A stretch of 64,000 nucleotides of DNA, from the sequence record LR588166.1. One strand, written 5' to 3'. The notes below the pieces were generated by a model. The model had not been told where the DNA came from and made no database searches. It worked only from the letters and a program-made list of their open reading frames with translations. Made by a program: the position numbers and the translations under genes. Shown piece by piece: positions 14,989 to 26,493 of the stretch (its first letter is position 1; the number at the start of each line of letters is the position of its first letter).

Positions 14989-15005
14989 TATAAAGGTAGA
15001 TATAA

Positions 15006-16232
15006 ATGTCGAAAGAAACATGCTCTTATTGCAATAAAGGCAAAGATGATGTGTCTAAGTTGTTTCGTAGCCCTGCTAAATATGGATCAAATGTATATAT
15101 ATGTGACCAGTGTGTAACTCAGTGCAACAATTTTTTAGAAACTGCCGAAACAAATGATCAGGAATCTAATAAATTAGAAATAAAATACACACCTGAAGAA
15201 CTAAAGGAATTGCTAGATAAAGACATTGTAGGGCAAGATCACGCAAAAGAATTACTAAGTCTAGCAGTGTATAATCATTATAAACGGGTAAACTATAACA
15301 CTACTGAACATGATGTAGAGTTATCTAAATCTAACATAATGCTACTGGGACCTTCAGGCAGCGGTAAGACATTTTTAATATCTAGTATATCTAAATTGTT
15401 AAACATACCTTTTGTTTCTGTAGATTCTACTTCGCTAACAGAGGCAGGATATGTCGGTGATCATGTAGAGACTATATTTACTAGATTAATTGCAGAAGCA
15501 AACGGTGACATAGAACTAGCACAACGTGGAATTGTATTTATAGATGAAATAGATAAGAAGCGTTCTAAAAAAGGAACAAATTCTGCAGGATCTGATGTTT
15601 CTGGCGAGGGTGTCCAACAGTCTTTACTTCGGGTGCTAGAAGGAACAACAATTAAATTAGAACTAAATTCTAACAGTATGTTTAGTCCTAGGCAGGAAAT
15701 TATGTTTGACACAACTAACGTTTTGTTTATAGTTGGCGGCGCATTTATAGGATTAGATGCAGTAATAAATAAAAGACTTAGTTCTACTAAATCTCAAATG
15801 GGATTTGGTTCCGAAGCTGGTAAACCCATAGAAGGTAGTTTATTCTATGTAGAACCGGAAGATTTGTATACATACGGTTTTATAAGAGAATTTGTAGGGA
15901 GATTTCCTGTTCTTATTGCGTTTCATGATGTAACAGAGACTATGCTTCGTCGAATTCTAGTAGAGCCTAAAAGTTCTATACTTAAACAATATCAAACTAT
16001 GTTTAAATTAGATAACATTGAATTAGAATTCGATGAAGATTTTATAAAATCTGTTGCTACTACAGCGTTTAATAGGAAAACAGGCGCTCGTGGTTTAAGA
16101 ACTATTTTAGAAAAAGAACTATCTAGTATAGCATATAGATTGCCTTCTATAAGACGAGAAGGGTTTAGCAAGATTATTATACACGAACTAGGAAAACATA
16201 ATTTCATAAAAGGGCAAAATGAAGACATTTAA
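15006..16232 (+). CDS. clpX: ATP-dependent Clp protease ATP-binding subunit ClpX
   Basis: C4 Zn domain, GQDHAK, GPSGSGKT, EAGYVG, FIDEIDK, DVSGEGVQQ, MGF loop, GARGLR. Confidence 0.96.
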   Translation: MSKETCSYCNKGKDDVSKLFRSPAKYGSNVYICDQCVTQCNNFLETAETNDQESNKLEIKYTPEELKELLDKDIVGQDHAKELLSLAVYNHYKRVNYNTTEHDVELSKSNIMLLGPSGSGKTFLISSISKLLNIPFVSVDSTSLTEAGYVGDHVETIFTRLIAEANGDIELAQRGIVFIDEIDKKRSKKGTNSAGSDVSGEGVQQSLLRVLEGTTIKLELNSNSMFSPRQEIMFDTTNVLFIVGGAFIGLDAVINKRLSSTKSQMGFGSEAGKPIEGSLFYVEPEDLYTYGFIREFVGRFPVLIAFHDVTETMLRRILVEPKSSILKQYQTMFKLDNIELEFDEDFIKSVATTAFNRKTGARGLRTILEKELSSIAYRLPSIRREGFSKIIIHELGKHNFIKGQNEDI

Positions 16233-16425
16233 TATAATTACTGGTCTTACTGTAGAAGTAAGACACGATAACTTTAACCAAGCACTTAGAACTTTTACTA
16301 AAAAGGTTCAAAATTCAGGAAAATTAAAAGAAGTTAGAGAACGCGAATTCTATGAAAAGCCTTCTGTAAAAAAGACAAAAGCTAAAAAAGCAGCAATTCA
16401 ACGCCAGAAAAAGAAAAAAATATAA
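16219..16425 (+). CDS. rpsU: ribosomal protein bS21
   Basis: ALRTFTKKV...REFYEKPS with a basic tail. Confidence 0.9.
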   Translation: MKTFNIITGLTVEVRHDNFNQALRTFTKKVQNSGKLKEVREREFYEKPSVKKTKAKKAAIQRQKKKKI

Positions 16426-16427
16426 TA

Positions 16428-16763
16428 ATGGATCTTTGCAGGATTTTAAATAATGAACTTACGTTTTGCAGAAATCGCAGGAATAAACTCTATTATGGCC
16501 TACGGCAATTGAATAAAGTTGACATACCTGTAGATCCTGCAGATTCTTTACTTATTTCCAGCATAAAACAGGATATAGAACATCTCCAATCGTATAAAGA
16601 TGCTATATCCGAATGCAGCAGACTTGAACAACGTATAATCTGTATAGATAAAACTATGCAGTATATCCGTCGGTATTGCAACCATAAGTTTGTGTATCAC
16701 AATACTAATTATCATACAAATACAGATGCAGAAAAATGCATTTATTGCGGATTAATAATTTAA
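16428..16763 (+). CDS. hypothetical protein with C-terminal CxH...CxxC Zn ribbon
   Basis: YCNHKF...CIYCG. Confidence 0.6.
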   Translation: MDLCRILNNELTFCRNRRNKLYYGLRQLNKVDIPVDPADSLLISSIKQDIEHLQSYKDAISECSRLEQRIICIDKTMQYIRRYCNHKFVYHNTNYHTNTDAEKCIYCGLII

Positions 16764-16764
16764 T

Positions 16765-17235
16765 ATGGCATATTTTTCAACTAAGAGATTTGGACCTATT
16801 TCCACTGGCCATCGTCAATGGAAAGATACGGGTCATTGCAGCAGAATACACGGCTACGGAAGAACAGTGAAGATTGTTTTTTCTGCTACTACATTAGATG
16901 ATAAATTGTGGGTAGTAGATTTTGGTGGATTGAAAGATTTCAGGAAATGGCTGGAAGAACAATGGGATCATAATGTTTTAGTTGCATCTGACGATCCCAA
17001 GTTAAATATCCTTAAACAAATGGAACAAGAAGGTCTAGTTAAATTAAATATAATGGATGTTAAAAAAGGCCATGGTCCCGGAATAGAAGGTTCATGTAAG
17101 CATCTGTTTGACTATTTGAATCCCATTATAGAAAAACAATCTGGCGGAAGATGTTGGGTCCATAGTATAGAAATATGGGAACACGAAAACAATTCCGCTA
17201 TATACGAAACATATAAGTCAACATTTAAAAGATAA
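16765..17235 (+). CDS. second QueD/PTPS-like protein
   Basis: GHRQW, HCSRIHGY, WVVDFGG, WDH, WEHENNSA. Confidence 0.85.
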   Translation: MAYFSTKRFGPISTGHRQWKDTGHCSRIHGYGRTVKIVFSATTLDDKLWVVDFGGLKDFRKWLEEQWDHNVLVASDDPKLNILKQMEQEGLVKLNIMDVKKGHGPGIEGSCKHLFDYLNPIIEKQSGGRCWVHSIEIWEHENNSAIYETYKSTFKR

Positions 17236-17238
17236 ATA
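17232..17238 (+). promoter_or_regulatory. late promoter core ATAAATA
   Basis: upstream of hsp20. Confidence 0.5.
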
Positions 17239-17318
17239 ACATTAGTATTCCATGAGGAATACTATACAACGAGTGCCTTATTGGGCTCACACTATATCTT
17301 GCGTAAAGGAGATTAAAA

Positions 17319-17750
17319 ATGCAAAAACATGTTATAATGTCATCTAACCTAGCTAATTATAGATATGCACTAGGTGCAACTGATTTACTTAATACTATTA
17401 CTAATGAACTTAGTAGCCAGAAGTTTCCTCCCCATAATTTGATAAAGAATGCAGACGGTAGCTATTGTCTTGAATTAGCTCTTGCTGGATATGATAAATC
17501 TGAGCTAGACGTTTATGTAGATAGCAGAGAACGACTGTTAGTAATAGAAACAAAACCGGAACGAATTTTTAAAACTGAAGTAGAATACGAACACAAAGGT
17601 ATTTCTAGTAAAGATTTTTCTGTCAAATTCAGGCTTGTAGACGATCTTATAAATATATCTTCGTGCGGTATGAAAAATGGTATTCTAACAATAAAAATTC
17701 AACCGCCGAGTCCTGCAGAATCACAACGAAAAGTAATTGATATAGAATAA
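17319..17750 (+). CDS. small heat shock protein Hsp20/IbpA-like
   Basis: FPPHNL, LELALAG, HKGIS, NGILTI; SD AAAGGAG. Confidence 0.92.
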   Translation: MQKHVIMSSNLANYRYALGATDLLNTITNELSSQKFPPHNLIKNADGSYCLELALAGYDKSELDVYVDSRERLLVIETKPERIFKTEVEYEHKGISSKDFSVKFRLVDDLINISSCGMKNGILTIKIQPPSPAESQRKVIDIE

Positions 17751-17761
17751 TGTTTACAAAT

Positions 17762-17785
17762 AAAAAGCTGGTATTCCAGCTTTTT
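17762..17785 (+). terminator. rho-independent terminator
   Basis: aaaaagctgg-tatt-ccagcttttt. Confidence 0.8.
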
Positions 17786-17801
17786 ATTTTTGCTATATAA
17801 C

Positions 17802-17829
17802 TTGACGACACTGTTTAAACATATATAAT
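17802..17829 (+). promoter_or_regulatory. sigma70-type promoter for clpS
   Basis: TTGACG-16nt-TATAAT. Confidence 0.55.
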
Positions 17830-17865
17830 AATGTGTATCAATTACGATCAACTTGGGATTTAAAA

Positions 17866-18168
17866 ATGACTGTAAAGGTAGCTAATAAAGTTGAAACTTC
17901 GTCTACTGTATTTCAACCTAAGAAATATAATGTAGTTTTTCACAACGATAACAAAACCACTATGGAATTTGTTATGCAATTGTTAGTATATATATATGAC
18001 TACGATGCATCTAGCGCATACAATACAATGATGGAAGTGCATGAACGCGGCGCAAAGATTGTAGGCAGCTATACAAAAGAAATTGCAGAATCGAAACAGT
18101 CTAAATCTGTTCAACTTGCTATTAACAACGGTTATCCCGATTTTAAAGTAACTGTAGAAGAATCGTAA
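17866..18168 (+). CDS. clpS: ATP-dependent Clp protease adaptor ClpS
   Basis: YNVVFHNDNKTTMEFV..L..MMEVHERG..G.YTKEIAE; start moved to the ATG at 17866. Confidence 0.92.
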   Translation: MTVKVANKVETSSTVFQPKKYNVVFHNDNKTTMEFVMQLLVYIYDYDASSAYNTMMEVHERGAKIVGSYTKEIAESKQSKSVQLAINNGYPDFKVTVEES

Positions 18169-18180
18169 TACAGCAAAAAC

Positions 18181-18200
18181 GGGGGTAGACACCTACCCCC
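18181..18200. terminator. GC-rich hairpin after clpS
   Basis: gggggtag-acac-ctaccccc, flanked by aaaaac and ttccc. Confidence 0.6.
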
Positions 18201-18212
18201 TTCCCTATTATA

Positions 18213-18219
18213 ATAAATA
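18213..18219 (+). promoter_or_regulatory. late promoter core ATAAATA
   Basis: 23 nt upstream of the sod start. Confidence 0.6.
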
Positions 18220-18242
18220 AAGCATATAGGGATATAAGAATT

Positions 18243-18791
18243 ATGAATGATTCCATAAAGAAATACATATCTATTGCAGAAGCTGCATCGTCCGTAAAGA
18301 AAATTCCTATCCCGTATTCCGTAAGTAGTCTTAGTCCTACTTTCTCTAAAGATTTAGTAGAACTACATTACGGAACATTATATTCTAATTACATATCTTC
18401 AGTAAACAAAGACCCCAGTAATAAATTTTCATTTGCAGGTGCATACCTGCATGGGATTTATTTTAGTCAATTTACTGATTCTCAAAAAAGATATTCTCCT
18501 TCCGGGATATTATTAAAAGATATAAAATCTAAATTTACTTCATTTTCTAAATTTAAAAATGAGGTTATATCTGCATGCATGGATGTTCATGGTTCTGGAT
18601 GGATTTATGTTTCTAATACCCTTGTAATAAAGGAAATCCCAAATCATGAAGTAAGAGACGATATATTCTTACTTATTGATTGTTGGGAGCATGCATATAT
18701 GCTCGATTATAAAGCAGACAAGAAGTCATACTACGAGAATATATGGAATATATTTAATTGGGAATATCTGGAGGGTATGTATTCTCAATAA
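18243..18791 (+). CDS. sod: Fe/Mn superoxide dismutase with N-terminal extension
   Basis: ELHYG, YLHG, GSGW and IDCWEHAYMLDY (His/His/Asp/His ligands). Confidence 0.9.
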   Translation: MNDSIKKYISIAEAASSVKKIPIPYSVSSLSPTFSKDLVELHYGTLYSNYISSVNKDPSNKFSFAGAYLHGIYFSQFTDSQKRYSPSGILLKDIKSKFTSFSKFKNEVISACMDVHGSGWIYVSNTLVIKEIPNHEVRDDIFLLIDCWEHAYMLDYKADKKSYYENIWNIFNWEYLEGMYSQ

Positions 18792-18810
18792 ATAACTTCG
18801 GTGAATACTT

Positions 18811-19095
18811 ATGAGAACTAAAAAGCATTGGGATGAATGCCTCTTTTCTTTATCTTATGAAACTGCACAACACATGGCATTTGAATTAAAGGAATTTGCC
18901 AAGCAAGCAGGATTTAATCCAAACGGTATTAAAGTATTGTCGAAAAAACAAATTCATAAATATGTAAAAGCTGATGCAGCTATTATGTGGGGCGAAGGTC
19001 CAGAGTGTTGGGCTAATTCGTTATTGTTTAAAGATTTATTAGGAGTATACGTATCTACCTATAAGGGTAACACAATTCTATTTCATGACAGGTAA
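18811..19095 (+). CDS. hypothetical protein
   Basis: 94 aa; ATAAATA at 18788. Confidence 0.6.
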   Translation: MRTKKHWDECLFSLSYETAQHMAFELKEFAKQAGFNPNGIKVLSKKQIHKYVKADAAIMWGEGPECWANSLLFKDLLGVYVSTYKGNTILFHDR

Positions 19096-19104
19096 TGCAA
19101 ATAA

Positions 19105-19398
19105 ATGATAGATATACACACTATTGGAAAAGATTACACAGTAATCAATAAAAGAAATGGTGTATCTGTAACAGTTAGTGTGGTATTTTATAAAGATATT
19201 TTACGCAATATAAAACCATATTCTATAACTCAACCTATAGACCAATATGTAATTTATGTTTGTGAACAAATTAAACCAACTAAACCATATCACTGGCATA
19301 CTAATTATTCGGAAACTATTAACTTAGAACATTTAATAAAAGAAACATTACAAAATAATAAACAATTATTAATAATACAAGATTTATATACAGACTGA
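19105..19398 (+). CDS. hypothetical protein
   Basis: 97-aa ORF in operon. Confidence 0.6.
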   Translation: MIDIHTIGKDYTVINKRNGVSVTVSVVFYKDILRNIKPYSITQPIDQYVIYVCEQIKPTKPYHWHTNYSETINLEHLIKETLQNNKQLLIIQDLYTD

Positions 19399-19465
19399 TA
19401 TGGATAGCTTTTGCAACAAGAAGCTTGAAGATCGACACAAACGCATGACGTAATAAGGATTATAA

Positions 19466-19693
19466 ATGAAAACATTTGATTTTACTTTTGGAGTATATAG
19501 AGCTAAACAGTGTGAATGGAAAGGAAATTCTAAAACACAATGCGGAGCAAAACCTATAGAAGGAAAAGCATATTGTTTAGAACACTTTAAAAAGGCATAT
19601 GTTAATATTTCTGAAGAAATGTTAGATAAACAAACAGAAGCACAGTTAAAGAAATTAGAAAAAGAAATGCCTGTGGTAATCGAAGAAGAGTAA
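19466..19693 (+). CDS. small Zn-binding protein resembling the GcrA C-terminal domain
   Basis: CEW...CG...G.AYCLEH...AY; SD AAGGA. Confidence 0.6.
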   Translation: MKTFDFTFGVYRAKQCEWKGNSKTQCGAKPIEGKAYCLEHFKKAYVNISEEMLDKQTEAQLKKLEKEMPVVIEEE

Positions 19694-19724
19694 AAACAAT
19701 CCCCGCAATTGCGGGGATTGTTTT
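19693..19724. terminator. bidirectional terminator (perfect 32-nt palindrome)
   Basis: aaaacaatccccgcaattgcggggattgtttt. Confidence 0.85.
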
Positions 19725-19738
19725 ATAAGGAGATAAAA

Positions 19739-20383
19739 TTGGAACTTAAAACAAATGAACAGAAATCTATAATAGGAACATTTGCAACTTTAATGTTAAC
19801 TAGAATATTTGCAGCCGCTGGCGCATATTTAGCATTAACTATGCCAATTCTTAATATGAATTTACTTGTGTGTATATTTTCATATTTTGCTATAATGTTT
19901 ATTATAGATTGTATTAGAACAAATGTGTATGTGTCTATTGTAGGGAGTGTATTTTTATTATTTTGGCAAGGAATAACATTAGGGAATGGATTAACTGCGT
20001 TACTAGGGGAAGTAGCGCCATTATTAGTTTTAGTTATGTTTACTATAAGTTCGTTTTTATATATGTTTCTTTGTGCAAACGCAATTATGTCAAAAAACAT
20101 TTTTAGTTTCGCGTCGTCATTTAATGTTTCTATAGCAATGACTTTGCTTGTGACCATAGTAATGTCTATACTATTAGATCTATCAGTCAGTTATTGTATA
20201 GGCAGTATGATAATAAACGTGATTAATTGCGTGGTAATACTCAAAACATTAGAAGATTGTATAAACGAAAAATGTGAAAATATATCTATGCAAAAACTAT
20301 CTACAACTGTAGTATTATTTTGGTACGATACAATAATGGAGTCTATAGAGAAACTTTTAAAACTATTTACATATAAGCGGTAA
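19739..20383 (+). CDS. multi-pass membrane protein, YccA/Bax inhibitor-1-like
   Basis: about 6-7 hydrophobic segments; C-terminal VLFWYDTI..IEKLLKLF resembles the BI-1 LYLD.INLF..LL.LF motif; TTG start after AGGAG. Confidence 0.6.
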   Translation: MELKTNEQKSIIGTFATLMLTRIFAAAGAYLALTMPILNMNLLVCIFSYFAIMFIIDCIRTNVYVSIVGSVFLLFWQGITLGNGLTALLGEVAPLLVLVMFTISSFLYMFLCANAIMSKNIFSFASSFNVSIAMTLLVTIVMSILLDLSVSYCIGSMIINVINCVVILKTLEDCINEKCENISMQKLSTTVVLFWYDTIMESIEKLLKLFTYKR

Positions 20384-20423
20384 ACAGTTATATTACACAC
20401 ATAAACCCTTATAGGATCAAATA

Positions 20424-22154
20424 ATGCAACATATTGTTAAGTTCATAAAAAATAACAGATTTATTATTTTATTTCTTGTAATATGCATAACTGGATTTGC
20501 GTTAACGATTAATTACAAGCCGACTAGTGTGTCTATAAACACCTTTTTATCAGACGCAACGAGCGGTAAAATAATTAGTGTTAAATTAAAAGAAGATGGA
20601 CAAACACTACAGTATGTTACTAATACATCAGACAGAAGAAAAGTAACATTCCCCGGAGATACCAGTAAATTAATAGAATCATTTCTTAAAGCAGGTGTTC
20701 CTGTAGTAACTGAAGAACCTTCTACCCCTAGTCCATTCCTTACTAGTTTGGTGTCTGGACTTATAGTAATGTTAGTATTTTTAATTTTAATGGTATTCGT
20801 TTTGAAGCGAATGGGTCCTGGTTCTTCATTAGATGCAAAAAGTAAATCCAAACTTCGCAAGATAGAACCAAAAGACATTGAAGTAACGTTTAACGATGTA
20901 GCTGGTCATACTCACGAAATAAATGAAGTAAAAGAGTTAGTTGATTTTATTGCTCATCGATCTAAGTATTCTAGCATGGGAATAGATGTGCCTCGTGGAA
21001 TTCTAATGCACGGCAGTCCGGGCGTCGGGAAAACACTTTTAGCAAAGGCAATGGCAAAAGAGGCAAATGTTAATTTTTTCTATGTTGCTGGATCTGAGTT
21101 TAATGATACATTTGTCGGTGTAGGTGCAAACCGTGTAACAGATATGTTTAAAAAAGCAAAGGAAGCTGCGCCGTGCATTATTTTCATAGACGAAATTGAT
21201 GCACTTGCACAACAACGTTCTACTAAAATATCTAATGGGTCAGACCAAACACTCAATCAGTTATTAGTAGAAATGGATGGAATGCAAGATAACGATGGTA
21301 TTACAATTCTTGCAGCTACTAATAGACTAGATATATTAGATCCGGCTGTTATTCGTCCTAAACGATTTGACAGAATTGTTCAACTAAGTTTACCTGATGT
21401 GGGGATTAGACAGAAGATTTTAGAAATAAATGCAAATGGAAAAACATTTGAAGACAATGTAGATTTTTCAGTAATAGCAAAAGGAACTCCTGGATTCTCT
21501 GGTGCTGAGTTAGCTAAACTAGTCAATGAGGCTGCAATCTATGCAGTAAGGTCTGGACAAACTGTAATTACCCAGGAGCATGTAGAAAGAGCAAAAGATA
21601 AGGTGTTAATGGGTGAAAATTCGACAAAGAAATATACCCAGGAAGAATTGCTTCGTACTGCATACCATGAAGCCGGTCATGCAATATCAGGTGTAATTTA
21701 CAAATCTAATGATAACTTGCATAAAGTATCTATCATTCCTCGAGGTCTAGCACTAGGTGTAACTGTATTTCTTCCTAACGAAGAGCCTTCTGTTAGCAAA
21801 GAGCAGCTCATGAATAAATTAGTTACGTTAATGGCAGGCCGCGCAGCAGAAGAACTTATATACGGTGAATCTGCAATATCCACCGGCGCAAGTTCAGATA
21901 TAAAGAGAGCAACTGAACTTGCAGTATACATGACTACATCGTGTGGTTTCGGTAGTATAGGACCGGTTGCGACATCGACCCTGTCTAGTTTGCAATCTAG
22001 TGCAGAACAAGATGCAGCAATTCTAGTAAAAGATGCGTACAATAAGGCTATAACATTACTTTCGGATAAAAAGGCTGAATTAAAACTTGTAGCAGACTTG
22101 TTAATGGAAAAAGAAACAATAGATTGTGCAGAAGTAGAACAAGTTCTTGCATAA
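20424..22154 (+). CDS. ftsH: ATP-dependent zinc metalloprotease FtsH
   Basis: 2 TM segments, GSPGVGKT, FVGVGA, FIDEID, ATNR, HEAGH, GRAAEE, TGASSD. Confidence 0.96.
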   Translation: MQHIVKFIKNNRFIILFLVICITGFALTINYKPTSVSINTFLSDATSGKIISVKLKEDGQTLQYVTNTSDRRKVTFPGDTSKLIESFLKAGVPVVTEEPSTPSPFLTSLVSGLIVMLVFLILMVFVLKRMGPGSSLDAKSKSKLRKIEPKDIEVTFNDVAGHTHEINEVKELVDFIAHRSKYSSMGIDVPRGILMHGSPGVGKTLLAKAMAKEANVNFFYVAGSEFNDTFVGVGANRVTDMFKKAKEAAPCIIFIDEIDALAQQRSTKISNGSDQTLNQLLVEMDGMQDNDGITILAATNRLDILDPAVIRPKRFDRIVQLSLPDVGIRQKILEINANGKTFEDNVDFSVIAKGTPGFSGAELAKLVNEAAIYAVRSGQTVITQEHVERAKDKVLMGENSTKKYTQEELLRTAYHEAGHAISGVIYKSNDNLHKVSIIPRGLALGVTVFLPNEEPSVSKEQLMNKLVTLMAGRAAEELIYGESAISTGASSDIKRATELAVYMTTSCGFGSIGPVATSTLSSLQSSAEQDAAILVKDAYNKAITLLSDKKAELKLVADLLMEKETIDCAEVEQVLA

Positions 22155-22181
22155 TATTAAGTAATTAAATAAGGCACTATT

Positions 22182-23552
22182 ATGATTCGTACAATTTTAG
22201 ACGAAATCGGAAATACTACTAAACGAACTACTAAATTAGCTATTCTAGAAAGAAACAAGGATAATGACACATTAAAAAAAGTAATACATTTGGCATTAAA
22301 TCCATTTATTAACTTTTATATAAAGAAAATACCAGAATTCACGCGAACAGATACTATTCTTACCTTAGAACAAGCACTAACCGAATTATCTGTTCTATCT
22401 GATAGAATAAAAACAGGTAATGCCGCAATATTGCATCTAACATATATTCTTTCTAGTTTAACAGATGACGATGCAAATGTAATTATTCGGATTATTAGAA
22501 AGGATTTACGCGCAGGGATACAAGATGCTACAGTTAATAAAATATGGAAGGATCTAGTACCTAAATATCCGTGCTTGCTAGCAGAACCTGCAACAGAAAA
22601 TCTTCTTAGTAAATGCAAATTACCATATTATTCTCAGATAAAATCAGACGGAACTAGAATTAATATTCATGTTAGTAAATCCGGAATTGTTTCATTTTAT
22701 GGAAGATCGGGTAAATCATACGATTTTAAAGATATTTTAGATGACGCATTTGTTTCGCTAATTAAATATTTTGACGAAGATATGGTTTTTGATGGCGAAT
22801 TAATAGTTGTAGATTCTAATAATAATATACTCCCTAGACGGACAGGAAACGGTATCATAAGTAAAGCACAAAGTGATACCATTACAGATAATGAAATAAA
22901 GAATGTAAGAGCAATTCTTTGGGATTGTATTCCTCTTAGATGTTTTAATGAACATAAATGCACTACACCCTATTCTAGTAGATTCGAAAGTTTATCGAAT
23001 GCAATACATAAATTGCAAGTAGATGATGATTATATAGAAAGTAAAATATATAATACTATTTTAGGAAATATAGGGCAAATTAGGTTAGCAGAAACTCGTC
23101 TCCTTTATAGCAAAGAGGAAGTAAAAATCTTCTTCGACGAAGCAATATCTAGAAACGAAGAAGGCATAATGGTAAAATGTCCTGATAGTATATGGGAAAA
23201 TAAACGAAGTAAGTTAGTATTAAAATATAAATCAGAAAAAGTATGCGAATTAATTGTAACTGGGTTTAATTACGGAACAGTAGGTACTAAAACAGAACAT
23301 AAAGTTGGATCATTAATATGTGAAAGTTCAGACGGTAAGGTAATAGTCAACATATCCGGTTTAACTGACAGCGAACGCGATGATGCAACAGCAAATTTTG
23401 AAAATAAATGGAAACATAGCATAGTGAGTGTTATGTATAATGAAAGAATTAAAAGCGTAGACCGAATGGATGTTGATTCGCTTTTTCTTCCTAGATTTTT
23501 AGAAATAAGAACAGATAAATTTGAAGCAGATTCTAGCAAAGATATAAAATAA
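22182..23552 (+). CDS. ATP-dependent DNA ligase (T4 gp30-like)
   Basis: KSDG adenylation motif, FDGEL, EEGIMVK, KYK, SLFLPRF. Confidence 0.93.
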   Translation: MIRTILDEIGNTTKRTTKLAILERNKDNDTLKKVIHLALNPFINFYIKKIPEFTRTDTILTLEQALTELSVLSDRIKTGNAAILHLTYILSSLTDDDANVIIRIIRKDLRAGIQDATVNKIWKDLVPKYPCLLAEPATENLLSKCKLPYYSQIKSDGTRINIHVSKSGIVSFYGRSGKSYDFKDILDDAFVSLIKYFDEDMVFDGELIVVDSNNNILPRRTGNGIISKAQSDTITDNEIKNVRAILWDCIPLRCFNEHKCTTPYSSRFESLSNAIHKLQVDDDYIESKIYNTILGNIGQIRLAETRLLYSKEEVKIFFDEAISRNEEGIMVKCPDSIWENKRSKLVLKYKSEKVCELIVTGFNYGTVGTKTEHKVGSLICESSDGKVIVNISGLTDSERDDATANFENKWKHSIVSVMYNERIKSVDRMDVDSLFLPRFLEIRTDKFEADSSKDIK

Positions 23553-23561
23553 GGATATTTT

Positions 23562-23723
23562 ATGATAAATGTAGGCGACGATGTTATTATTAAAACCGAA
23601 TTTGGCGAGACATGCGGAATTGTTATAAAATTTATATCTAATAAAACTATTGCTATAGTAGAATTAGAAGACGGTAACGAAATAGAAATAGGCAAAGGCG
23701 ACTTAGAGTTGAGTAATAAATAA
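23562..23723 (+). CDS. small beta-barrel (KOW/SH3-like) protein, missing from the ORF track
   Basis: MINVGDDVIIKTEFGETCGIV... 53 aa; SD AAGGA. Confidence 0.6.
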   Translation: MINVGDDVIIKTEFGETCGIVIKFISNKTIAIVELEDGNEIEIGKGDLELSNK

Positions 23724-23742
23724 TAAAAAAGGATATATTATT

Positions 23743-24252
23743 ATGACATTACCTTCTTCGGGTTCTCTTTCTACACAGCAAATTAACGTTGAATTAGGAA
23801 ATCCACAAGATGCTCGGTTAGATGTAAACGCTGCCGAAATGAGGATATTATGTGGTGCAGCAACTACAGGGCAAGTAAGTATTGCTGGCGCATATGGTAG
23901 AATGCCAACAGGACAATATATATTAACTTCTGCTCAGTTGCAAGCTGCACCGAATGCCCAATATGGATATAGAGTGTTTGCAACAGGTTCTAAAATAAAC
24001 AATATTGTTTTTAAAGGATACAATTTAACTATAGTTGCATGGAATGATTACGATAAAGTGCTAGGAATAGGTGTCGATCAAACCAATGCACCAACCAACT
24101 TAGTAACTAATTTCTGGAGTTCTGTAACCGGTTATTTAGGTGCGCCAACACAATATACTTCAGATTTAGGGGGTAATACAGTATACGGATGGACCTGGAA
24201 TGGCACAAATCCATTCCCTGTATCTTCGGTTCAAATGGTGCAAATTGTGTAA
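23743..24252 (+). CDS. putative virion appendage/fibre protein
   Basis: MTLPSSGSLS..QINVELG N-terminus; ATAAATA at 23716; SD AAGGA. Confidence 0.6.
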   Translation: MTLPSSGSLSTQQINVELGNPQDARLDVNAAEMRILCGAATTGQVSIAGAYGRMPTGQYILTSAQLQAAPNAQYGYRVFATGSKINNIVFKGYNLTIVAWNDYDKVLGIGVDQTNAPTNLVTNFWSSVTGYLGAPTQYTSDLGGNTVYGWTWNGTNPFPVSSVQMVQIV

Positions 24253-24281
24253 AATAAAAGGGCGCTGAGCCCTTTTATTTT
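24251..24281 (+). terminator. rho-independent terminator
   Basis: aaaataaaagggc-gctga-gcccttttatttt. Confidence 0.8.
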
Positions 24282-24348
24282 ATCATAATTGTGTATATAA
24301 TTTATATATTTGGTGTTATAATGTATACAATAACAAGAGAATAATATA

Positions 24349-25122
24349 ATGACACCACGTTTAAAGGAATTACTAGAATCACTTATAATTTTAGATACAG
24401 AAACTACACATTTAGATACTCGTGTAGCAGAAATAATAGAATTAGGTATAGCGTCTTATACTAACAAATGGACTTATAGTAGTGAATTATTTAAACCCAG
24501 AGTTAATCATGCGCAAATAACTCCTAAAATAAGTTCTATAACTGGCATAACAGATCGTATGGTAGAAGGAAAACCTACTTTTGCCGATGTAGTCGACCAA
24601 TACAAATCTATTACAAACTGCCAACTAATAGTTGCACACAATGCTCCGTATGATAAAAAGGTGTTAGAGAGATATAACATAGCATCTAGCACTAATTGGT
24701 TGTGTACTTTAAAACTTGCACGATATGCATATCAAACCGATCCTACTTTTGAAGAATTTAAATTATCTTATCTAAGATATAAATTAATGTTAGATATCCC
24801 TGACGATTTCGTAGCGCATAGAGCAGGAGAAGATGCATATATGTGCGGTGTATTATTGGAACGAATAGTAACTGATTTAGAGTCTAAGAATAAATTAGAT
24901 AGTGATATACCGTATGCAGATCAACTTATAGAAATATCTAATAAGCCGTTAATGCTTTCGTCTATGCCATTTGGCAAACATAAAGATAAACCCTTAGATG
25001 AAGTTCCAATGGACTATTGGATTTGGGCATTAAATAATTTAGATGCATTAGACGAAACAAAACCCGAATATAATAGAGACTTGGCGTATACATTAGAACA
25101 ATATTTGAGCGACAAGATATAA
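24349..25122 (+). CDS. DEDDh 3'-5' exonuclease, ExoX-like
   Basis: LDTETT, VAHNAPYD, HRAGEDA, C-terminal MPFGKHK. Confidence 0.9.
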   Translation: MTPRLKELLESLIILDTETTHLDTRVAEIIELGIASYTNKWTYSSELFKPRVNHAQITPKISSITGITDRMVEGKPTFADVVDQYKSITNCQLIVAHNAPYDKKVLERYNIASSTNWLCTLKLARYAYQTDPTFEEFKLSYLRYKLMLDIPDDFVAHRAGEDAYMCGVLLERIVTDLESKNKLDSDIPYADQLIEISNKPLMLSSMPFGKHKDKPLDEVPMDYWIWALNNLDALDETKPEYNRDLAYTLEQYLSDKI

Positions 25123-25146
25123 AAATGCCCCGTACGGGGCATTTTT
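25121..25146. terminator. bidirectional terminator between convergent genes
   Basis: aaaaatgcccc-gtac-ggggcattttt. Confidence 0.85.
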
Positions 25147-25516
25147 ATCTATCCATAATATTTCCAGGACCATATGGAATATCGTTGTATTGTTTATAAC
25201 TAGGATCTATTTTTTGGTAAGGCTCAAACGGTAATCCTGCACGTTCTTTTGCCATTTGTAAACCTCTAAAACCAGGAGATTGTGTATCGTCGTTTTTTGG
25301 ATGATTATTAAATGGTTTATTGGCAGGATTTTTCGGAATAGTTTTAAATACAGGAGTCGGTCCGTCACCTGTCATACCCAAAACAGCATATCTCTTAATC
25401 TGTTTTTGATTATTAGTATATAATTCTGGATTGTAAAATGCATCAATGTCAGTGTTTGCAGCACCGTACAATTCTATATGTGTTTTATTTTCTAGTATTA
25501 TTTCTTTTATTTTCAT
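25145..25516 (-). CDS. hypothetical late protein with MKIKEIILE N-terminus
   Basis: translation reads on the reverse complement (track strand label is wrong); minus-strand ATAAATA at 25522-25528 favours the 25516 start. Confidence 0.7.
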   Translation of the reverse strand: MKIKEIILENKTHIELYGAANTDIDAFYNPELYTNNQKQIKRYAVLGMTGDGPTPVFKTIPKNPANKPFNNHPKNDDTQSPGFRGLQMAKERAGLPFEPYQKIDPSYKQYNDIPYGPGNIMDR

Positions 25517-25612
25517 AACAATATTTATCATACTAAACTTTAATTATAACTAGACGATGTATAATAACATTGCTATTATATGCACAACGTAAACAAACAC
25601 AGGACTTATTAT

Positions 25613-26284
25613 ATGAGCTACAATTATACAGCACAAGGACAATATCCTACCGAAGCTGGCTTGATCCCCATGGTTGTTGAAAATAACGGCAACGGCGAAC
25701 GTAGCTGGGATATTTATTCCCGTCTTCTAAAAGAGCGTATTGTTTTTCTTAATGGTCCAGTTCGCGACGAGATGGCATCTGTAATTGTTGCCCAGCTTCT
25801 TTTCCTCGAATCGGAATCGGCAGAACAGCCCGTTTCGATGTATATTAACTCTCCGGGCGGCAGCGTTACTGCTGGTTTGTCTATTTATAACACGATGGAA
25901 TATATTTCGTGTCCCGTTAATACCATCGTGTTAGGCCAAGCATGCAGCATGGGGTCTTTCCTAGCACAAGCAGGTACTCCGGGGCATCGTTATGTGTCTA
26001 GCGAATCCCGCACTATGATTCATCGAGCCAGCGGTGGCTTCGGGGGATTCGGCGGCACAACTCAACAAGTTGAGTTAGGAATCGAAGATGCTGTCCGCCA
26101 TGCGGCAGAACTATCTAAAATTAACAAGCGTCTCACTGAGCTGTATGTCCATCATAACACTGCCGGCAAGACGTTCGACGAATTTATCGAAATTATGAAA
26201 TTCGACACATTCCTCTCTGCTCAAGAAGCAGTTGAGTTCGGGTTGGCAGACAAAGTATTCCGCACTAAAGCTGACCTGAAGTAA
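25613..26284 (+). CDS. clpP: ATP-dependent Clp protease proteolytic subunit
   Basis: [27 protein letters not shown] (Ser), MIH (His), [16 protein letters not shown] (Asp); SD AGGA 8 nt before 25613. Confidence 0.96.
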
Positions 26285-26310
26285 CTATTCACTGTAGCTG
26301 GTGATAATTT

Positions 26311-26335: not shown

Positions 26336-26408
26336 GTGTGAGCATTATTTGTTTAAGGTAATTTAAATAACACTATATAAATGTCGTGTGTAGTGTTTTA
26401 AATGCATT

Positions 26409-26435
26409 AAAAACCCCGCATAATGCGGGGTTTTT
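26409..26435. terminator. bidirectional terminator, likely for the minus-strand gene 26494..26724
   Basis: aaaaaccccgca-taa-tgcggggttttt. Confidence 0.8.
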
Positions 26436-26493
26436 AGTAATTGTGTTGCAGCACAAACACATAAACATTATACGCTAAATTGTGTTAAAAATG

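Follow-up and report, generated by a model that had tools for sequence, protein, structure and literature searches.

The stretch of DNA considered here (the window) comprises 64,000 nucleotides (nt) of sequence record LR588166.1, in which each window position equals the record position minus 62000, and it comes from vB_PaeM_MIJ3, a PA5oct-like jumbo Pseudomonas phage of the genus Wroclawvirus. At positions 19739-22154 it carries two genes on the plus strand: an open reading frame (ORF) for a membrane protein of 214 amino acids (aa), which is MIJ3_00106 and corresponds to EST35_0265 of PA5oct, and directly behind it the phage's own ftsH. Our subject is the smaller of the two genes, its kinship with the YccA/BI-1 proteins, and its relation to the protease encoded next to it. 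The elements of the pair, with the basis of each call in brackets, are as follows.

19728..19732, plus strand: Shine-Dalgarno sequence AGGAG, six nt ahead of the TTG start (sequence)
19739..20383, plus strand: divergent YccA/BI-1-family membrane protein, 214 aa (Pfam, profiles, hhalign, variant codons)
19739..19789, plus strand: short N-terminal tail and start of the first transmembrane segment, TM1 (17 residues before the conserved TM1 column)
20294..20371, plus strand: C-terminal helix, residues 186-211, charged and amphipathic, with Asp197 (hydropathy, hydrophobic moment)
20384..20423, plus strand: spacer of 40 nt, containing the ribosome-binding site AGGA and nothing that resembles a terminator (sequence, terminator scan)
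20424..22154, plus strand: phage FtsH, 576 aa, MIJ3 gp107, made up of two transmembrane segments, a periplasmic domain, an AAA+ module (about 21000-21389) and an M41 protease domain (about 21636-22145) (Pfam, TIGR01241, alignment to 7vhp)

An earlier, sequence-only reading of this DNA described a hydrophobic multi-pass ORF with a TTG start after AGGAG, ending 40 nt ahead of an intact ftsH, and in these respects it holds: the TTG at 19739 stands behind its Shine-Dalgarno sequence as described, the ORF stop ends at 20383 with the ATG of ftsH at 20424, and the product has six strongly hydrophobic segments and seven helices in an AlphaFold model. The TTG start is further supported because the two uncultured homologues introduced below, P0003 on contig L005 and P0004 on contig L009, begin at ATG and align with it from residue 1. 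A shorter ATG start, chosen in the Ettore and PAC2 annotations, was rejected, since it would cut off the N-terminus, whose conservation extends to L005 and L009. Also rejected as real genes were two antisense ORFs on the minus strand (19723-20157, 144 aa, and 20191-20400, 69 aa), because it is the plus-strand product that has family homologues and a conserved start.

The downstream gene encodes what its sequence marks as a divergent FtsH with a C-terminus shorter than that of the E. coli protein. Its reading frame is uninterrupted, the Pfam domains FtsH_ext, AAA, AAA_lid_3 and Peptidase_M41 all score over their cut-offs, and the protein aligns to residues 5-594 of E. coli FtsH (7vhp) with an E-value of 7e-134, the P-loop, Walker B, pore-loop, arginine-finger and HExxH stretches being identical or conservatively replaced. 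It lies under the equivalog cut-offs of TIGR01241 (550.7 of 600 bits) and NF008004 (469.7 of 1008 bits).

The assignment of the 214-aa protein to the BI-1/YccA family (PF01027, Bax1-I), likewise proposed by the sequence-only reading, is weak when made from the single sequence and solid at the level of profiles, with a very divergent protein as the outcome. Searched alone or as a two-sequence profile, the ORF gave no relevant match among PDB sequences, YetJ included; PADLOC gave none either, and a word-indexed protein search returned nothing beyond the ORF's own cluster. Across all 1.84 billion representative proteins, phmmer found a sole true relative, P0003 (215 aa, 28% identity, E 1.5e-15), the other match being a 58-aa fragment identical to the C-terminus of the ORF itself. 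Pattern scans for relatives found none in IMG/VR (with the window protein and P0003 as queries), in JGI metagenomes or in GTDB genomes, and in a tblastn search of 50,697 phage records the protein was present only in the 11 Wroclawvirus records.

P0003 itself matches Bax1-I at 32.9 bits (E 7.4e-8), and a profile built from it and the window protein led to the third clade member, P0004, and then to 63 bacterial proteins, the best of them at E 5.9e-10 (database of 5.8 billion); all 66 proteins found with this profile carry PF01027, and many of the bacterial matches are named "Bax inhibitor-1/YccA family protein" or "modulator of FtsH protease". Compared by hhalign, the three phage-clade proteins match 40 bacterial homologues with 99.1% probability (E 9e-19, 194 columns) and E. 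coli YccA alone with 94.7% (E 5.7e-8, 189 columns). In the nearest bacterial relatives (Alkalimonas and kin), the gene lies between a response-regulator gene and tus genes of the dsrE/dsrH/dsrC type, and the DNA matches E. coli yccA (in RefSeq "FtsH protease modulator YccA"), which has tusE as its neighbour. To judge by these comparisons, YccA orthologues are the closest kin that the phage protein has in cells, and we regard its homology to the YccA branch, at roughly 20% identity, as established by the profile matches together with the shared tus-gene neighbourhood.

The pairing with ftsH is kept outside the genus. The contigs that carry the two relatives bear on this, as do two features immediately upstream of the pair in the window.

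19466..19693, plus strand: 75-aa Cys-rich small protein (53% identity to the upstream ORF of L009)
19693..19724, no strand assigned: strong hairpin with a 14-bp stem, 7 G-C pairs and a 4-nt loop, terminator-like on both strands (terminator scan)

On contig L005 (2.6 kb), a gap of 45 nt separates the P0003 gene from a downstream gene for a 575-aa FtsH (51% identity to the FtsH of the window), after which comes a terminator-like hairpin. Contig L009 (1.1 kb) carries P0004 and ends 18 nt past the P0004 stop codon; upstream of its BI-1-like gene, at 1-231, lies an ORF of 76 aa with 53% identity to the product of the window ORF at 19466-19693, so that synteny extends upstream of the pair. The adjacency of the membrane-protein gene and ftsH has thus been kept in L005 while the two proteins diverged to 28% and 51% identity, which argues for a functional pair.

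A hidden Markov model of the family found no BI-1-family ORF at 84 other FtsH loci, namely 80 metagenomic relatives of the L005 FtsH (of which about 57 offer more than 1 kb of sequence upstream of the match) and the loci L003, L004, L014 and L015, which are two IMG/VR contigs whose FtsH is 42% identical, one contig from a giant virus and the record of MaAM05. No ftsH lies near yccA in the bacterial loci examined.

These observations bear on the possibility that the two genes were merely acquired or inherited as a block, the membrane protein being a passenger that has no dedicated role or is just one more FtsH substrate. The ORF is orphan-like, with very few relatives, and several genome annotators missed it or called antisense ORFs in its place, as would suit a gene of little consequence. 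Yet its reading frame is unbroken and still next to ftsH where the protein has diverged to 28% identity, and against five other genus members its variant codons are synonymous over non-synonymous by 10 to 1. Moreover, yccA and ftsH are not neighbours in those bacterial loci, which means that the phage did not take the pair over as one block from an arrangement known in cells. We therefore hold a mere passenger to be highly improbable. The conserved pairing, the restricted distribution and the synonymous excess in variant codons together identify the pair as a conserved, lineage-specific cassette under purifying selection.

Within the genus, the variant codons of ftsH comprise 58 synonymous and 10 non-synonymous ones. 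Their density among genus members (68 of 577 codons) is about twice that in the neighbouring genes (11 of 215 and 22 of 457), and this higher density may reflect recombination inside the genus.

Some further features of the compared loci deserve mention. A small ORF with a single transmembrane segment lies directly upstream of the BI-1-like gene in L009 (235-414, 59 aa) and in L005 (3-89, truncated by the beginning of the contig); the window lacks an equivalent ORF and has only the hairpin in that place. In L004 (1272-3068 and 5934-6536), the genes upstream of FtsH are a DUF6980 ORF and one for the small subunit of ribonucleotide reductase, and a ClpP-like gene follows about 3 kb downstream, so that the co-occurrence of FtsH and ClpP recurs. 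In L014 (Microcystis phage MaAM05), the FtsH gene has glgX, proS and lepA around it, which gives the locus the look of cellular sequence. Other "phage" FtsH records were set aside, being mostly short unannotated contigs.

We turn to the fold and to what sets the phage clade apart from its bacterial homologues; statements on family conservation rest on column counts over 97 bacterial sequences. The AlphaFold model of the 214-aa protein, computed from a 100-sequence alignment, has seven helices, a mean predicted local distance difference test score (pLDDT) of 71 and a predicted template-modelling score (pTM) of 0.69. When the model was compared with the PDB by Foldseek, B. subtilis YetJ was the only recurring family, with 12 of the top 50 matches and TM-scores of 0.38-0.42, the best chain reaching E 0.59, probability 0.84, TM-score 0.42 and a root-mean-square deviation of 9.8 A. 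The comparison with BI-1 structures, by which the sequence-only reading was to be judged, is thus divided: the six-helix body leans towards BI-1, and the match to YetJ is not significant. Likeness to YetJ (4pgr, 6nq7-9) consists in these recurring full-length matches and in the family-profile alignment (E 9e-16).

Helices 1-6 have a hydropathy typical of the family, and it is in the seventh that the phage clade departs from it. The mean Kyte-Doolittle hydropathy of the helix-7 segment is 0.73 in the window protein and 0.19 and -0.13 in its two relatives, with 5, 6 and 8 charged residues, whereas the bacterial homologues average 1.54 (standard deviation (SD) 0.21, minimum 1.22) and have 0-1 charged residues there. 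The hydrophobic moment of the segment is 0.48-0.63 in the phage clade (0.48 in the window protein) against a bacterial 0.34 (SD 0.03, maximum 0.40). These values suggest that helix 7 is a surface or cytoplasmic amphipathic helix and not the buried central helix of BI-1. The loop between TM6 and TM7 is only partly conserved: five columns there (Gly, Gly, Glu, Asn, Tyr) show no variation in 97/97 bacterial sequences, and of these residues the window protein has only Asn (residue 181), while all but one Gly are present in P0003 and P0004.

The C-terminal helix had been read from sequence as BI-1-like and containing Asp. An aspartate is there, Asp197, invariant in the three phage-clade proteins; however, it sits one helical turn past the canonical column, in a helix that is charged, and its own column is Asn in 97/97 bacterial homologues. 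The aspartates of YetJ, located by the same profile alignment (174 and 198 of the chain correspond to Asp171 and Asp195), fall in columns that hold Thr170 and Val192 in the window protein and Cys/Cys and Lys/Arg in the two relatives; in the bacterial homologues the first of these columns is Asp in 81/97 and the second is Asn in 69/97 or Ser in 25/97.

These residues are the chief evidence on whether the protein is instead a pH-sensitive cation-leak channel of the BI-1/YetJ type, which would act without FtsH and shift the ion balance or the membrane potential of infected cells. Such a channel would be in keeping with the family homology, with profiles that include the phage protein and reach YetJ, with the seven predicted helices, with the invariance of Arg60 as well as Asp197 in the phage clade, and with the acidic Glu172 and Asp173 near the end of TM6. 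It does not sit well with the loss of acidic residues from both di-aspartate columns throughout the clade, with the Asn that bacteria have in place of Asp197, or with a seventh helix whose charge and hydropathy are far from the bacterial range; it leaves the conserved place ahead of ftsH unexplained, and ion transport has not been shown for YccA itself (PMC9379554). We accordingly think a channel of this kind very unlikely, and the suggestion of ion-leak activity that came with the sequence-only reading is not borne out, given Thr170 and Val192 in the di-aspartate columns and a charged amphipathic seventh helix. The loss of the YetJ-type acidic pair and the character of helix 7 lead us to infer that ion-leak activity has probably been given up.

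The third departure lies at the N-terminus. Before the TM1 reference column there are 17 residues in the window protein and 21 in P0003 and P0004, compared with a minimum of 24 and a median of 28 in the 97 bacterial homologues. Residue 7 of the window protein aligns to residue 17 of E. coli YccA, so that the tail is about 10 residues shorter.

In work from the Ito laboratory, FtsH substrates reportedly need a cytosolic region of about 20 residues. Extended cytosolic regions are typically required of FtsH substrates (PMC13039401), and E. coli YccA is itself such a substrate, which, once bound, hinders the degradation of SecY (PMC7876416). The variant yccA11, which lacks 8 N-terminal residues, binds FtsH/HflKC, escapes degradation and stabilises SecY (PMC7876416). 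A second precedent comes from mitochondria, where TMBIM5 binds and inhibits AFG3L2 (the m-AAA protease, a mitochondrial FtsH homologue) and is itself degraded by AFG3L2 (PMC9379554).

In light of these precedents, what might the role of the phage protein be? We propose a YccA-branch protein, highly divergent and adapted to the phage, that acts as a stable FtsH-binding gatekeeper and has lost the ion-leak core, a reading to which we give a probability of roughly 0.5. The YccA-like protein would be made together with the phage FtsH from a two-gene cassette and would take its seat beside the FtsH hexamer as an inner-membrane partner. There it would limit or steer the choice of membrane proteins to be extracted and degraded by the FtsH of the phage and possibly also by that of the host, much as YccA shields SecY in E. 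coli and TMBIM5 acts on the m-AAA protease. With a tail about 10 residues shorter, reminiscent of the non-degraded yccA11 with its 8 missing residues, it would resist degradation and so serve as a stable gatekeeper and not as a sacrificial substrate. By analogy with the two cellular systems a role as FtsH modulator is plausible; the binding to FtsH, the direction of the effect and the targets are what we infer beyond family membership, conserved pairing and derived sequence features. As for the targets of the pair, receptors, translocons or defence effectors, as named in the sequence-only reading, are a matter of speculation.

We draw a distinction between this proposal and each of the known systems. 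With E. coli YccA/FtsH it shares the protein family, the protease family and, in the cellular relatives of the phage protein, the tus neighbourhood. The differences are that the phage protein has only about 20% identity to bacterial homologues, that the genes are unlinked in bacteria and adjacent in the phage, that the tail resembles yccA11 rather than wild type, that the TM6-TM7 loop invariants are only partly kept and helix 7 is charged, and that no hflK or hflC is annotated nearby. TMBIM5/AFG3L2 follows the same logic as proposed here, a BI-1-family membrane protein controlling an FtsH-type protease, but TMBIM5 retains the dyad and is a Ca2+/H+ exchanger that couples proteolysis to membrane potential, whereas the phage protein is non-acidic at those positions. 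YetJ differs in the low, non-significant TM-scores and in the Asp171/Asp195 columns, which the phage protein has not conserved.

The CIII protein of phage lambda is both an inhibitor and a substrate of host FtsH, competing through an amphipathic helix; in concept it comes close to the gatekeeper proposed here, which would likewise be phage-encoded and has its amphipathic helix at the C-terminus. It is, however, a small peripheral peptide unrelated to BI-1 and acts on the host protease only, lambda having no FtsH of its own.

A number of observations weigh against the gatekeeper proposal. With respect to the family, the ORF alone scores 21.4 bits against Bax1-I (E 2.4e-4) and does not reach the gathering cut-off of 34.1 bits, and single-sequence searches of NCBIfam and PHROGs with it gave no match. 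With respect to the fold, Foldseek against the PDB returned no match at E <=0.001, and the confidence of the model falls from a pLDDT of about 70-88 over residues 10-176 to below 50 over residues 178-214, low values that agree with a charged amphipathic helix 7. The pairing beyond the genus is carried by a single independent contig with both genes, L005, together with L009, and a second viral FtsH clade (42% identity) has no BI-1-like partner, which means that FtsH does not need one. The argument from the short tail is affected by the choice of the 97 bacterial comparison sequences, which were selected by similarity and are not balanced; the short tail could equally mean that another handle is used, for example the charged C-terminal helix. 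Finally, the upstream hairpin ends 14 nt before the TTG and bears on the structure of the transcript.

The direction of the effect might also be the reverse. As a positive adaptor, the protein would bring particular membrane proteins, from the host or the phage, to the phage FtsH or would anchor this protease in HflKC-type assemblies of the host, and proteolysis would be broadened or redirected, not restrained. The conserved pairing would serve an adaptor equally well, and no hflK or hflC is annotated within 44 kb around the genes. Set against its uncultured counterparts, the BI-1-like protein of the window retains 28-30% identity, compared with 51% for FtsH and 53% for the 75-aa protein, a much faster divergence that would fit changing partners, although fast divergence is usual in polytopic membrane proteins anyway. 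Both of the characterised members that touch FtsH-type proteases, YccA and TMBIM5, inhibit them, and no adaptor is known in the family. On balance we consider an adaptor unlikely, though worth keeping in view beside the gatekeeper.

If the gatekeeper proposal is extended, the cassette would be a self-contained viral membrane-proteostasis unit, in which a phage FtsH is combined with a non-degradable YccA-derived governor, a channel core turned into a protein-binding device, as part of a set of genes with which the phage runs its own quality control in shut-down hosts (ClpX, ClpS, ClpP, ClpA, DnaJ, a GroES-like protein, Hsp20 and superoxide dismutase). We offer this wider picture as a decidedly doubtful one. 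The genus member Paride has been reported to replicate in deep-dormant P. aeruginosa (PMC10761892), a trait with no known link to these genes.

Taken together, YccA/FtsH in bacteria and TMBIM5/m-AAA in mitochondria point to control of FtsH-type proteases as an ancient function of the BI-1 family. Cellular genomes keep the two genes apart, and there the roles of channel and regulator are hard to tell from each other; in the virus the genes stand side by side and the channel features have apparently been discarded, which would make the phage protein a natural separation-of-function variant for studies of FtsH control. PA5oct-like jumbo phages, candidates for therapy and a model for the infection of dormant cells, have an unusually complete set of proteostasis genes, which the pair extends to the membrane.

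Both genes were already public, and what is new is the pairing beyond the genus and the three derived features. Imam et al. (2019) described the MIJ3 FtsH (gp107) as the first for phages and left the upstream gene unmentioned (PMC6892783), and Lood et al. (2020) reported transcription of the PA5oct FtsH through the whole infection (PMC7318152); in the PA5oct GenBank record, FtsH is flagged as detected by electrospray ionisation tandem mass spectrometry (ESI-MS/MS). A literature search did not find a paper that discusses a YccA-like/FtsH pair in phages. Bases 19400-23600 match MIJ3 at 100% identity. Over the same bases, ten other Wroclawvirus records, including PA5oct, PAC2, Paride, Cassandra, Deifobo, Ettore, Callisto, 30-2 and 30-3, are 98.8-99.4% identical to MIJ3, and the locus is annotated inconsistently among them, as hypothetical, with a shortened start or as antisense ORFs. 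The ORF is already labelled "FtsH-interacting integral membrane protein" in the PA5oct and PAC2 records, is "hypothetical" in those of MIJ3 and Callisto, and in phage 30-3 has given way to two annotated antisense ORFs. Uniform naming of the BI-1-like gene across Wroclawvirus is now possible.

Of the features immediately upstream, the 75-aa Cys-rich protein, which has only weak matches to the GcrA C-terminal domain and to zinc fingers in Pfam, may belong to the same conserved block. The hairpin could be the terminator of an upstream unit, an attenuator or an RNA-stability element; the 14 nt between it and the start codon leave no room for a promoter there. Rfam gave no match over the whole window. 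A second hairpin with a similar G+C-rich core occurs at 26406-26438.

The cassette lies within a proteostasis island of about 15000-26300, with ClpX, ribosomal protein S21, a QueD-like gene (16765-17235), Hsp20 (17319-17750), ClpS (17833-18168), an Fe/Mn superoxide dismutase (18243-18791), FtsH itself, and ClpP near 25600-26300. ClpP is 3.5 kb downstream of the cassette and the other listed island genes are upstream; further downstream, the PAC2 annotation has a GroES-like chaperonin, DnaJ and ClpA. Between the superoxide dismutase gene and the Cys-rich ORF, a 94-aa ORF at 18811-19095 has a weak Pfam match to Tox-MPTase3 (metallopeptidase toxin 3; E 3.5e-4, 21.2 bits, cut-off 25).

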